From Adineta vaga (lineage: Eukaryota > Animalia > Rotifera), in NCBI GenBank assembly GCA_021613535.1, contig CP075492.1:3782001-3846000 (forward strand): DNA of 64,000 nt, in the 5' to 3' direction. Position 1 is the first letter of the stretch, and the number at the start of each line of letters is the position of its first letter. The notes below the pieces were generated by a model. It ran no database searches. It was not told the origin of the DNA and was given only the letters and a program-made list of their open reading frames with translations. A program made the translations under genes and the position numbers. Shown one piece after another: positions 58,829 to 64,000 of the stretch.

Positions 58829-59801
58829 AATCTTCAAAATCACTTTTGATCGATTGAAATCAAAATAACTATTCTTGTATCTATTTCTATATGTTCTGTT
58901 TTTCAAAACCAATCTGTATCATTCATATTGTGTTCTCTTGATGTTGTTTGTTCTTTATTCTGATTTGATCTATAAAAGGATATTTTAAATATACACTTTA
59001 AGTATTCGTACATTTCATTTAATAGTTTCATAACAAAAAACGGTGCACGACGTGTAGCTGTATGTGAATTTCGACAGTGTAGTTCTATTAGTACAGATGG
59101 CTTTGTAGGAACAGCTGTTGCATGTGGTGTTGTTGGTTTCTTCAATCCAGCTTTAGGTGTCATCGCTTTTGTAGCAAAAGTAGCAGCTGATTATGCAATA
59201 TCGAAACAAGATATGTCCATCATTGTGGCTATTAAAGAGCTTGTACGTGCTGGCTTTTTACGACTGAATGAGACAACTATGCAAATTCAACTAGCCTAAC
59301 ACTTTATTTTTCTATGATTTTAACGATAACATTTCAAATTTTTAAGTGCAACAATTATCATATTTTGTGTTCATACTTTTTTAAATAAGAAAATAGAAAA
59401 ATTTTCATTTTTCTAAAAATTTACTAGCAAATAAACTACATTTTTATAAAGTTAACATGTTAATATCTTCAACTTTAGAGAAAATATTTCTCGATAGGAT
59501 ATATAGAAAAATATCGACTTGAAAATTTTATCAAAAACAAAAATCATAAATAATGAAAAGGTAGCACAAAACAGTGCACTAAATAACATCCCTAACGCGA
59601 TTAACTTTCGAATTAATTCTTTTTCTGTACGATAATGACGAAACATACCAGAATGATTCTGAAACTCAAGAATACTAATGAAGTTATATTCATTTGTTTT
59701 GTTATATCTATACGAATTATATAGAAATATTTATCAAAACAGAACATCTTGAGAGTGTGAGTTTTATGAGTACATGAGAAATTTTTACTGTCAAATTCAA
59801 A

Positions 59802-62062
59802 CTAAGCAGAAAATTCTTTATTAATTGTCATAAACTTAATAAAATCTCTCAATTCATCTACTTTAGTCGCAACAAAAACAAGTTGCTGTTCTGTTGAACT
59901 CAATTCTGATTGAACAATGGTTTCAGCTCGTTTTTTATCACTAGTAAATACCAAACAATAATTCGAAAAACCTAATTGTCTTATTGATTTAATTAAACGA
60001 ACACCCGCATTATGAACTGGATATTCATTTTTTCGATACATACAAGTGATTAAACGAAATGTAGTTTCATTTTTTAAACGTTGCCCAAATGGTGATCGAA
60101 GAAATGCCAGAGCATCGTCGGTTGATGTTCGAGGAATGAAATGTACATCTAAATTCATTCCGTCACGTACAGCATTTTCCATATAATTTTTAATTTCACT
60201 ATTTTTTCCGAAGATTTTGTCATCAACCCAGAGAATCGAATATATACTCAAACCTAATTCAACTTGTCTCATATAGATCGTATGTTGTTTTTGATCACGA
60301 GATAAGTGATGTTTGTAAACGAAAAATGTCGATTGAGGTAAAAATATCACTTCTTTTTTATCGGGATTTTGTGAAAATTGTTTGATTGAACGAGCACTGA
60401 ATGAATCAATCTTAAATTGTGTATTTTTCTTGTCCGATGTTACTTCATCATCTATATTACCTTGACCAAATTGAATCCATTTTACTAAATTACCCGGTTC
60501 ATATAATTCAAGTTCATCACCAGTCAACTCATAAGTACATGTAACCATTTCCCAACAGTAGGGAATATGTAAGAGTGCTTTAAAGAAATAAAACACCATT
60601 GGAATTATTTCATTTTGTACGTTTTTTTCAATACGTTCATTGGCGGAATGACGAGCGATGAGTCTTGCTCCTCGATTAATCATATCAAAGTTTCCGCCAG
60701 TATAAAATGAAAGAACCAAAGCAGCAGCTTGATTGCTATCAGCAGGAAAGTCTTTTCGAGTAAAATACGGTGCAGATTTTTGAACTAATTCTTCATGTTT
60801 CTTCATAATTTCATCGACATTCACACTTCTCTCTGATTCATAGTGACGACAAATTTGCTTGAGTGTTTCAAATGATCGATCTCGGCCAATTAAATCAAAT
60901 AATGTTGTATTAAAACGATCTTCGCGGTCTTCAGTAATTGTTAAATATTCTAATAAATTCTCCAATTTTATCATATCTTGCGTATTACCTTCAATAATGT
61001 TTTTCAATTCATCTAAATGTTCACGCTTTGTTAAACGACCAATTAATATCATAAAACTATTATCATTTGCATGAGAATTAGGTAGACTGTCTAATGAACT
61101 CGACAGAGATGAACTGTTCAATAGTTCTCGACTTTCTATAAACAACAAAAAACATTTTCAATTCTATAGATTCGACTCATATTCGTTCGTACTTTGACTT
61201 GGAATAGTAGTGATTACAGATGAAATTTTTTCATTATTACTATTGACTAAAACTGATTTCGTATCGATATATTCATTTAAATACACATGACCTTTTTTTA
61301 TGAATCCATTGATACTCAATGGTCTTTGTTTTCCTTTACTTTCAGTATAAACATCACCAGCAATACCTTGAAAGATTTGTACAATATCTTCTTTTGGACT
61401 AGCAATATGTTTTAGTAAATGTTTAGTAAATAAACCATTTCGATCCGTTTCTTCACCATCACTTGCTGTTCGATGAGCACCACAAGCAAATTGAATAAAT
61501 GTACCAGCTGGTGCATCAACAAAACCAAGACCTTTTCCATCTGTGCCACCTAAAAAAAAAGAAATAAGCCAATTGTTTATCTTTACATATAATATATTCA
61601 TCCTATACCTTTTGTTTTTGGCATTTTGCCTGGCCAATAATTTCTACAACAATCTAAAATAAAGATCGTCACGTGTGAAGGATTTCTCATTGCTAATCGT
61701 TTTAATGTTCGTTCGACAGGTACTGCACTATCTTCCACATCATCCTCAGTATAAACATCTTCATCATCAATAGGCATAAGATAATTGGAGCCTTTCACTT
61801 CATAACCATGTCCAGAGAAATAAAATAAGACTAAATCACCATTATTTATTCGTCCAGAGAAATTTGTAATAGCCTTAACCATTTGTTTATTTGTTAAATT
61901 GATTTTAGTATCAACAATAAAACCCATACCGATTAATTTATCACTTAAATCATTTGCATCATTGATACAATGACGAAGTTTACTTTCGGTTCGATTATAA
62001 TCGTTGTTACCGATGACTAAAGCTAGTTTTTGACGTGATGTATTAAGATTTGAAGCTGTCAT
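59802..62062 (-). CDS. Paracaspase-like C14 protease fused to a degenerate ART domain and a receiver-like domain (714 aa)
   Basis: KLALVIGN, YFSGHG (His), ILDCCRN (Cys), NGLFTKHLL. Exons 62062-61609, 61549-61193 and 61135-59802 join in frame. C-terminal ILWVDD...NAGVRLIK REC-like region. Confidence 0.88.
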
Positions 62063-62153
62063 TTATCTAAAATGTCCAAGATGATCAGAAACATCTTATC
62101 GAAAGATCAATATAAAATTTTGAAAGTTATTTCGTTGAAAAAAATTTTCTTCT

Positions 62154-62757
62154 CTATTCTTTATCGTCTTCATCATCATTCACATAATATTCTTCATCTT
62201 GTTCTTCCTCTTCATCAAAAATCGATTCATCTACTGCTGCTGGTATGCTTGTACCACCTCGAGTGTAAGAAGCCTAGAACAATCCAATAAAAAATCATGT
62301 ACGATAGAAATACGGTTACTTACGTTCTGTTTCACATGAAATACTAAATTTAACATACCAATCACAACTGGTATTTCTTTTTGTAACTTTTGTAATTCGT
62401 TTTTAATAGGTGTTGCTGATAAATAATGTCGAATACGGATCATTTTCTTTCCACTTGTACATCTAATCGAAAGAAGATATTCGAATATTCTTAGATTATG
62501 AATCTATCAATATACTTATCAAATAAAATATTTGAACGAGTTGTAATTCTGTAAAGTTTATTCATTACACATGAATACTTATATTTATCGGCGGCTAATT
62601 TGTCTCTCTCATTAAGACCAGTTAAAATTTCATAAATTATAGATAAATCATCGGCAAGAGTTGCACACGTTTCTTTGTTTGATGTAACTGTTGCAACTAT
62701 ATCCATACCATATTTGATCAACTTGATCACTGTTACAATACCTACTGGACTTGACAT
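62154..62757 (-). CDS. Stand-alone MLKL N-terminal (4HB/HeLo-like plus brace) protein with acidic tail (166 aa)
   Basis: Exons 62757-62516, 62462-62324 and 62273-62154. VTSNKETCATLADDL..MNKLYR..RHYLSATPIKNEL..LNLVFHVKQN aligns by eye with the MLKL 4HB/brace. Tail ASYTRGGTS..DEEEEQDEEYYVNDDEDDKE. Confidence 0.7.
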
Positions 62758-63526
62758 ATCGTGATGGAGCAGAAAAACTCTTACAGTTTAATAGTTGTAA
62801 CTCTTTTTGATATCAACAATATGATGTGAAATAATGGACTTTGTTTTGTTATCAGAAAACAAACGTTTACTACCTACCTGTCACATGATAAGACAATCTT
62901 TCCTTTCTACGAATCATATGCACATAAACTTATTGTTGAAAGTTTCGAAAACCTTATCTCATTATTCACATATAATTAAATATGAATTGCACATTATGTT
63001 TGAAACAATTATAGAAGACTTCTTGAAGTACGAACAAAGTATATTATACTTTTAAGAATATTTTGATTCATGTCCAATTTTCTAAAGATGAAACTAGATT
63101 AATTAGCAGAAGATAAAAGTTACATCCTGTCATTAGTACTTACGATTGGCATCAACCCAAGTTTTCTATCTTGTCTTGTACAGTTTAGAAAAGCTTATAA
63201 TTTAGCTGATAGTTCGATGTTATGTCACCATTTATCAAATTGATATTTTCTCTAAAAATGTGTCCTATTAGTATTATTTTTCTTATTGTAATAGTCATCT
63301 TGAATTGTAGAGTGATAAGAAGGAAAATGTTGACAAAGCATAATAGATCAAATTCTTTCAAAAGATTCTAAGTAATGTGTCGATGAATCTCAACGTTGTA
63401 TTTACACGAAAAAGTTAAATTCAAAAGAAATAGATTCATCTATTTCATACATTTGTCTGACTTGAACAGCTTTTCAATTGAATTATATACACTATCGTAC
63501 TGAATTCCTGCTGTTAAAACTCATGA

Positions 63527-64000
63527 CTAAAGACCTTCGAGTTTCGAAATCGTATTTCTATTAATTTTCTGCGCTGTCTTATAGCATTCGTGAGCTCTTG
63601 TGGATAATCCCATCTTTTCATATACTGAGCCAATGTTGTTGTAAGTTGTAGCGAGGGTGGAATGTTCCGAGGGAAGAGATTTTTGTTGAATGCTGAGTGC
63701 TTTATTGAACTTTTCGAGAGCTACGTCGTTCTTTTCCAACTGAAAGTACACTTTACCGATGTTAATCAAAGTAGAGGCTAAGTCTGAATGATCGGGAGGA
63801 AGAGATTTCTCTTGAATTCCGAGTGCCTTTGTGTAGGTTTCATTCGATGTTGAATAGTTTTGCATTTCGAAATATATTAATCCAATGTTGTTGTAAGTAG
63901 TGGCTAAATTTGGATGGTTTGTATAAAGGATTTGTTTTTGAATAGCAAGTGCTTTGTTATAGTATTCAAGTGCTTTTGAATAATTTTTTATCGTTGAATA
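63527..64000 (-). CDS. 3' end of a TPR-repeat protein (42-aa KLC-like TPRs); 5' part outside the window
   Basis: Repeats such as HPNLATTYNNIG, HSDLASTLINIG, HSTLATTYNNIG, KALSIQQKSLP. Confidence 0.9.
   Translation of the reverse strand, partial: YSTIKNYSKALEYYNKALAIQKQILYTNHPNLATTYNNIGLIYFEMQNYSTSNETYTKALGIQEKSLPPDHSDLASTLINIGKVYFQLEKNDVALEKFNKALSIQQKSLPSEHSTLATTYNNIGSVYEKMGLSTRAHECYKTAQKINRNTISKLEGL

Follow-up and report, generated by a model that had tools for sequence, protein, structure and literature searches.

The window analysed here, a stretch of 64,000 nucleotides from chromosome 3 of Adineta vaga (3,782,001–3,846,000; AT-rich at ~30% GC) in an assembly of 100.8 Mb and six contigs, carries on its minus strand two co-oriented genes which may together form a death or immune effector module. 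Gene 1, the first of the two, very probably encodes a four-helix bundle (4HB) of the type found in the executioner domain of MLKL, followed by a predicted disordered acidic tail. Gene 2 encodes a MALT1-like peptidase of the C14 family fused to a degenerate ADP-ribosyltransferase (ART) domain. Some functional coupling of the two genes is given a probability of about 0.4. An earlier note on this DNA had proposed a protease-activated, MLKL-type death or immune system; overall its interpretation is partly supported, and protease activation of the bundle is plausible as judged from the sequences.

Gene 1 corresponds to UJR07497.1 (P0138, I4U23_011786) and was predicted to encode 166 aa in three exons (62757–62516, 62462–62324, and 62273–62154, minus strand). 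Gene 2 corresponds to UJR07496.1 (P0001, I4U23_011785), with 714 aa in three exons (62062–61609, 61549–61193, and 61135–59802, minus strand). For both genes the models read from the minus strand agree with the annotated proteins in length and sequence; the spliced models were searched exon by exon and the annotated records were used for whole-protein steps. Between the stop codon of gene 1 (62156–62154) and the ATG of gene 2 (62062) lie 91 nt. The four introns (57, 59, 50, and 53 nt) have GT..AG ends in minus-strand reading (CT..AC on the plus strand), and RNA contigs from four public runs, aligned to 59700–62900, skip exactly all four, which shows that spliced RNA was sampled in these runs and that both genes are transcribed in the modelled form. 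The co-oriented, three-exon gene of 166 aa lying 91 nt upstream of the protease gene, as described in the earlier note, therefore agrees with both the annotation and the transcripts. The stop codon and short 3′ untranslated region (UTR) of gene 2 occupy 59773–59804, with poly(A) from ~59773 indicated by a T-run at the loose end of one contig from one run.

Residues 8–128 of the gene 1 protein make up the MLKL_N-type bundle region. Exon 1 (residues 1–80 plus 2 nt) encodes helices 1–3 with a conserved SNKExC turn, exon 2 (residues 81–127) a short linker helix and helix 4, and exon 3 (residues 128–166 and the stop codon) the junction SYTR/GG, with R132 as its arginine, and the acidic tail. Comparison of the P0138 family with nine Pfam-verified A. 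vaga MLKL_N domains by hhalign gave 94.9% (E = 4.7e-8) over 115 columns (8–128), and a N-K-x-x-C-x-x-L motif at the turn between helices 1 and 2 is common to the two families. When the family profile was compared with the PDB, the best five matches were human MLKL N-terminal-domain sequences (E = 0.004–0.007), with profile positions 7–129 spanning MLKL from about 5 to 127 end to end; ZAR1 and NRG1-type coiled coils ranked next. Four relatives of P0138 exceed the gathering score of 27 bits for Pfam MLKL_N (PF22215), namely P0129 (36.7 bits), P0139 (30.0), P0140 (29.2), and P0131 (28.6), and the closest relatives fall just below it (P0136 at 21.3 bits and P0123 at 17.1 bits). A protein-language-model look-up with exon 1, which serves as a lead only, returned MLKL_N clusters at 0.87–0.90 and HeLo at 0.82.

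A profile built from exon 1 and the A. vaga paralogue recovered only 15 clusters among 1.84 billion representatives. All organism-named members are bdelloid (Adineta vaga, A. steineri, Rotaria socialis, R. magnacalcarata, and assemblies labelled Didymodactylos), the rest being metagenome contigs. The family is a branch of MLKL_N specific to bdelloids, in which the tail is either acidic or of PBZ type. Outside this family, at least 11 more A. vaga loci score above the cut-off for MLKL_N, nine of which supplied the domains compared by hhalign; MLKL_N-like loci number at least 13 in all. One rotifer-like family member of MLKL_N type, P0129 (143 aa), is named “plasmid maintenance system antidote protein VapI” by one source, which is almost certainly a mis-annotation.

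The predicted fold is in keeping with the profile results. A first AlphaFold2 model (15 sequences; predicted local distance difference test, pLDDT, of 68.6), in which helices 1 and 2 were fused, was compared by Foldseek, VIA-wide, and Atlas and matched only helical structures of a generic kind, MLKL ranking 34th (Z 7.4), and it was replaced by a model from a 25-sequence alignment. This second model (pLDDT 74.0, predicted TM-score 0.62, 64 residues at ≥90) has helices at 7–21, 28–46, 50–83, and 90–130 and a disordered tail. Its top Foldseek row is the MLKL executioner domain (6zvo, probability 0.90; MLKL rows 0.90–0.93), with TM-scores of 0.57/0.60 against 6d74 (root-mean-square deviation, rmsd, of 3.2 Å) and of up to 0.68 by target against the CC-R domain of NRG1.1, although the E-values are not significant. 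In VIA the top row is human MLKL (6ux8; Z 11.7, rmsd 2.8 Å over 116 residues, model 4–127 against chain 1–121), followed by mouse MLKL (Z 11.5) and NRG1.1 CC-R (Z 11.4). The comparison with the MLKL N-terminal domain suggested in the earlier note returned a 4HB-like fold with MLKL at the top of both Foldseek and VIA, by a small margin over other bundles. With the profile results and the fold matches taken together, the assignment of gene 1 to the four-helix bundles of MLKL_N type is regarded as settled and is held with high confidence.

The MLKL 4HB and brace pattern reported earlier for the first ~127 aa is upheld for the bundle, by the family profiles, by hhalign, and by the second model. 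It is not upheld for the brace, as no brace helices were found in gene 1 and residues 131–166 are predicted to be disordered. No pseudokinase is present either, the protein ending at residue 166 as had been claimed. Because the gene 1 protein has neither brace helices nor a pseudokinase, control by RIPK-type phosphorylation is impossible for it.

The C-terminal part of gene 1 is instead a 39-residue acidic tail, predicted to be disordered. In members with such a tail, helix 4 is followed by a junction of the form [Y/F]-x-R and then G, S, or C. Of 12 sequences, 11 have the junction arginine; the one without it appears to be a mis-spliced model. This Arg-small junction lies exactly between a basic bundle (net +8 in gene 1; +5 to +10 and pI 9.1–9.7 in the family) and the acidic tail (net −14 in gene 1; −10 to −14 in the family). 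The tails share a motif I-P-x-x-D-E-x-[IV]-F-D with an invariant F (IP..DExxFD in gene 1) and a motif E-E-Y-Y-x-x-D-D with one invariant Y. A LIR/ATG8-type motif in the tail was ruled out by eye, as no [WFY]xx[LIV] core fits. In the sister 4HB members P0131 and P0139 two PBZ zinc fingers (PF10283, E about 1e-10) replace the acidic tail. Both lie on bdelloid-type contigs, and such an architecture would wire a membrane-attack bundle to ADP-ribose signalling.

Exons 1 and 2 of gene 2 were found to encode a Peptidase_C14 domain starting at residue 9 (Pfam E = 6.4e-27 and 4.9e-6), exon 1 carrying its N-terminal half with D35, H85, D137, and C139, and exon 2 its C-terminal part and a linker. The best solved relatives of residues 1–270 are MALT1 paracaspase chains (E = 7.5e-14), the matches to CED-3 (E = 0.0077) and metacaspase-9 (E = 0.0091) being far weaker. 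The His/Cys dyad consists of H85 (FYFSGHGY) and C139 (FILDCCR), aligned to the GHG and D-M-C-R of MALT1, and it is kept in four Adineta orthologues. Both the intact caspase-fold dyad (SGHG, DCCR) and the paracaspase-like protease fusion of the earlier note are therefore borne out, the fused domain being the ART. Residues D35 and D137 stand at the positions of MALT1 D365 and D462, which together with E500 anchor the P1 arginine (PMC4626109). Since two of the three anchors are thus matched, the gene 2 protease is likely to be of Arg/Lys-type specificity, as far as the alignment can indicate. The death domain and flanking Ig domains of the type 1 paracaspase architecture are not present in gene 2.

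The ART domain (PF01129) in exon 3 of gene 2 (60264–60761, minus strand) scores 28.7 bits against a cut-off of 22.3 and has hundreds of bdelloid homologues. Compared with seven ART homologues, the A. vaga domain keeps the R of the catalytic triad, while the SSS of the family has become GQG and its EDE has become KKE; in the A. ricciae orthologue the Arg is replaced by Gln. Because S-x-S is lost, together with the first Glu in A. vaga or the Arg in A. ricciae, the domain is probably inactive, to judge from its motifs. The last ~150 residues of gene 2 (59805–60239, minus strand) form a further domain which is conserved throughout the bdelloid ART family and belongs to no Pfam family; language-model leads, to be taken as leads only, point to CheY/flavodoxin-like folds (0.87). 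In other bdelloid proteins this chassis of ART and C-terminal domain is fused to ubiquitin, PDZ, or cytidylyltransferase domains (P0038, P0064, and P0074). Because the chassis carries such exchangeable N-terminal heads, we infer that the variable N-terminal domain is the output and the chassis a part which these proteins share for regulation or targeting. In all, A. vaga has 146 or more ART loci (418 candidates). Across its genome the Pfam ART score is highest (68.2 bits) for a locus that also lies in the window, at 1004–1507 on the minus strand; with one in-frame TAG, it is possibly a pseudogene or else a gene split by an intron.

The order of a 4HB gene followed by a co-oriented C14 gene recurs in two further species, the gap being 91 nt in A. 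vaga, 74 and 64 nt in A. ricciae, and ~300 nt in A. steineri. In A. ricciae (CAJNOJ010000238.1) there are two tandem copies, each with a 4HB gene (169 and 185 aa) and then a C14-ART gene of 741 aa. In A. steineri a 168-aa 4HB gene precedes a stand-alone C14 orthologue of 300 aa (57% identical, dyad intact), which is itself followed by an unrelated Ank-ART gene, and the flanking genes (an ABC transporter and a peroxidase) are unrelated to the A. vaga flanks. A small conserved gene with a hydrophobic stretch (GVVGFFNPALGVIAFVAKVAADY) has its final exon at 59000–59299 (plus strand) of the window and runs convergently towards the 3′ end of gene 2. Copies of this gene with 60% identity follow both A. 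ricciae pairs (L005, 6742–7050 and 15016–15311), and the tandem duplication in that species thus copied a three-gene unit. With the pair kept in A. ricciae and in A. steineri, this locus is not alone in showing the adjacency. The recurrence across bdelloids that the earlier note had called for was accordingly found within Adineta, but not at the A. vaga paralogue, in Rotaria, or in “Didymodactylos”.

The genome census of A. vaga, which covered 48 or more C14 exons and at least 13 MLKL_N-like loci, identified the present pair as the only directly adjacent one; the next nearest lie 9 and 19 kb apart on chromosome 4. There, a stretch of ~90 kb (C4:9,586,898–9,673,053) holds two MLKL_N loci and at least five C14 loci, with the closest pair separated by 9 kb. 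One of these MLKL_N loci sits in an open frame of 511 aa, probably with a kinase-like part. The paralogue of gene 1, also on chromosome 4, shares the same three exons, an Arg-Gly junction (AFSRGP), and an acidic tail. The idea that it is an ohnologue was ruled out, as it has no flanking synteny to the window and no C14 gene within 10 kb. The two closest paralogues of the gene 2 peptidase (66–67% identical, on chromosomes 2 and 1) have no 4HB gene upstream and no matching ART downstream.

The spacer between the two genes (62063–62153, minus strand) is tightly packed. Contigs of gene 1 end between 62077 and 62138, so that its 3′ UTR extends at least to 62077, no more than 15 nt from the gene 2 start codon; contigs of gene 2 begin at or below 62060. 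A pyrimidine tract with AG is located at 62072–62067, 4 nt ahead of the gene 2 ATG, and all four Adineta pairs have such a tract 4–12 nt before the ATG of the C14 gene (L005, 1709–1714 and 9993–9998, in A. ricciae; L006, 9019–9024, in A. steineri). We infer from its sequence and position that it is a candidate trans-splice (spliced-leader) acceptor. The packing fits such an acceptor together with co-transcription, or a promoter inside gene 1. Tight spacing is also expected of packed or trans-spliced bdelloid genes which have no functional link.

On the same strand upstream of the pair (window 63527–64000 and, past the window end on chromosome 3, L004 1–4346), one gene combines a death-effector-like domain with a transmembrane stretch and TPR repeats, and the next encodes an ankyrin-ART protein whose R / STS / EEE triad is intact. 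Death-fold and ART genes are abundant in this neighbourhood.

On the reading of a coupled pair, the following chain of events may be envisaged. The acidic tail would hold the basic, membrane-binding bundle inactive by masking it. The gene 2 peptidase would itself be switched on through its C-terminal part, that is, the ART-like and C-terminal domains, and once active would cut the gene 1 protein after the junction arginine R132. The freed bundle would then permeabilise membranes, as do the published A. vaga MLKL N-terminal domains when they lack their C-terminal domains. This exact mechanism, with release of the bundle by gene 2 through cleavage after R132, follows from position and motif logic and is put at clearly lower odds than coupling as such; we would hold it to be rather unlikely in every detail. 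About as unlikely is a wider scheme, in which a pseudo-ART or C-terminal sensor, perhaps of an NAD-derived ligand, would act on the MALT1-like peptidase, which in turn would remove the tail to yield a pore, the PBZ-bearing sisters reading poly-ADP-ribose. A three-tier design of sensor, protease, and pore has until now been known from gasdermins and from bacterial defence; here it would be built on the MLKL/HeLo fold, with proteolysis in place of phosphorylation as the gate.

Several observations weigh against a coupled pair. The pairing is one orthologous locus in one genus, and the A. vaga/A. ricciae synteny is simply retained, given that the next downstream gene is shared as well. Relatives of gene 1 occur without the protease: there is no C14 gene within 10 kb of the A. 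vaga chromosome 4 paralogue, none in the 7 kb downstream of Rotaria socialis P0146, and none downstream of “Didymodactylos” P0136 or of the metagenomic P0140. Four other short A. vaga MLKL_N genes likewise have no protease neighbour, being located beside NHL, CHORD-CS, and F-box genes. The chance of an adjacency somewhere in the genome is estimated at roughly 0.04 under random gene order, which makes it not very unlikely, and is higher if immune genes cluster, and a spacer of 64–91 nt is a small target for breakpoints. No RNA contig from the four runs bridges the 91-nt spacer, although contigs cannot exclude co-transcription. As for the proteins, P0138 has no Pfam match at E ≤ 1, either whole or per exon, and in VIA other four-helix bundles are close behind MLKL (Cbl 4H at Z ~10.4, Cbl and IncA at about 10–11), because of which the fold evidence alone is not decisive. 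In gene 2 the region of MALT1 E500 lies outside the alignment, only the p20-like half aligning by sequence, and there is no death-fold recruitment domain, the ART being the only other Pfam domain. In the “Didymodactylos” case, a GIY-YIG-like open reading frame downstream of P0136 (L008, 5951–6382, plus strand) is probably a retroelement insertion and may have displaced an earlier neighbour.

The two genes may instead be neighbours with no enzyme–substrate relation. As members of lineage-expanded immune or stress families they would be kept adjacent by microsynteny and tight packing, possibly in a shared trans-spliced unit, and the trigger of the bundle, if there is one, would be encoded elsewhere. 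This is a serious contender, although short of an even chance. It is favoured by the paralogue and the distant relatives, which keep the Arg junction and the tail with no C14 neighbour, by the unrelated neighbours of other short 4HB genes, and by the sheer size of the families (at least 48 C14, 13 MLKL_N-like, and 146 ART loci). The three-gene synteny with A. ricciae takes in an unrelated small gene, the upstream genes (one with death-effector, transmembrane, and TPR parts, the other Ank-ART) speak for general clustering, and the site resembling a splice acceptor ahead of the ATG points to packaging and not to logic. However, the A. steineri pair survives with both flanks changed, in A. ricciae both genes were duplicated together, and the predicted Arg specificity of the protease fits a conserved Arg at the one site where a cut would part bundle from tail.

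The genes could also be linked through ADP-ribose rather than through proteolysis, the junction arginine or the tail being modified or read, so that the ART-like part of gene 2 or another, active ART would control the bundle and the C14 peptidase would have other substrates. The PBZ fingers which stand in for the acidic tail in P0131 and P0139 are in line with this, as are the arginine specificity of the PF01129 enzymes and the presence of an ART gene or domain after the C14 domain in all three Adineta species. The ART of gene 2 has lost its motifs and is probably inactive, however, and ART genes are so numerous that adjacency to one means little. Moreover, PBZ binds the poly-ADP-ribose made by PARPs and not the products of ARTC enzymes. 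A link of this kind appears improbable. Equally improbable is a non-lytic role of the bundle, in trafficking or as an adaptor or scaffold, in which the acidic tail would be a motif for docking instead of an inhibitor. Four-helix bundles are common, and the fold match to MLKL is little above those to Cbl, IncA, and Rx bundles. The tail motifs with their invariant F and Y resemble short linear docking motifs, and gene 1 is constitutively represented among the RNA contigs of several runs. Yet the sequence homology is significant and specifically to MLKL_N, the bundle is strongly basic like lipid-binding 4HBs, and A. vaga MLKL N-terminal domains are cytotoxic (PMC11476962).

Wang et al. (2024; PMC11476962) described four MLKLs of A. 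vaga (UJR15617, UJR17341, UJR20247, and UJR32738). The N-terminal domain of AvMLKL-1 killed HEK293T cells, while at full length all four proteins lacked cytotoxicity. The same study did not find a RIPK homologue in Rotifera (PMC11476962). UJR07497.1 is not among these four proteins. A stand-alone 4HB with an acidic tail, a protease-gated 4HB, and the present gene pair were not found in the literature, the coverage of which was incomplete; within that limit the claim that the pairing had not been described before stands.

If the coupling is real, the system would be a small one, with a protein of 166 aa and a C14 domain of ~260 aa. It would bear on the organisation of cell death and immunity in bdelloids, A. 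vaga having large C14, ART, and 4HB families. To our knowledge, all MLKL, HeLo, and CC-R bundles described are released by pseudokinase phosphorylation, NLR oligomerisation, or amyloid templating. A short acidic tail removed by a protease would thus add a fourth mode of control to these bundles and would show that MLKL-type and gasdermin-type proteins have converged in how they regulate lysis. Whether or not the two genes are coupled, the family is a previously undescribed branch of MLKL_N, specific to bdelloids, whose C-terminal appendage is of a new kind.

Among known systems, gene 1 is most like the MLKL executioner domain (PF22215), with which it shares a homologous bundle (8–128), the N-K-x-x-C-x-x-L motif, a basic surface, and an N-terminal position ahead of what would be a regulatory C-terminal part. 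It differs from MLKL in having no brace and no pseudokinase, an acidic disordered tail following the Arg-small junction instead. The plant CC-R (RPW8-like) and fungal HeLo and HeLo-like domains belong to the same fold class (NRG1.1 CC-R, 7l7v; Z 11.4, TM up to 0.68) and are likewise N-terminal, membrane-targeting bundles which serve as death effectors. However, activation of these bundles depends on NLR oligomerisation or on a C-terminal prion motif which acts by amyloid templating, and gene 1 has neither an NLR fusion nor an amyloid motif. For gene 2, MALT1 is the closest solved relative of the C14 domain, with the same dyad and equivalents of D365 and D462, but gene 2 is fused C-terminally to a degenerate ART and a further domain and lacks the death and Ig domains. 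We know of no described paracaspase with such a fusion. As a pair, the two genes recall by analogy the gasdermin–protease pairs (bGSDM with a caspase-like protease, and HET-Q1/HET-Q2), in which a membrane effector with a short C-terminal inhibitory piece is encoded beside a protease, and the likeness to a microbial defence locus drawn in the earlier note is an analogy in the same sense. The A. vaga pair differs from these in that its putative effector is a helical bundle and not a gasdermin fold, in that its host is an animal, and in that the adjacency is confined to one genus.

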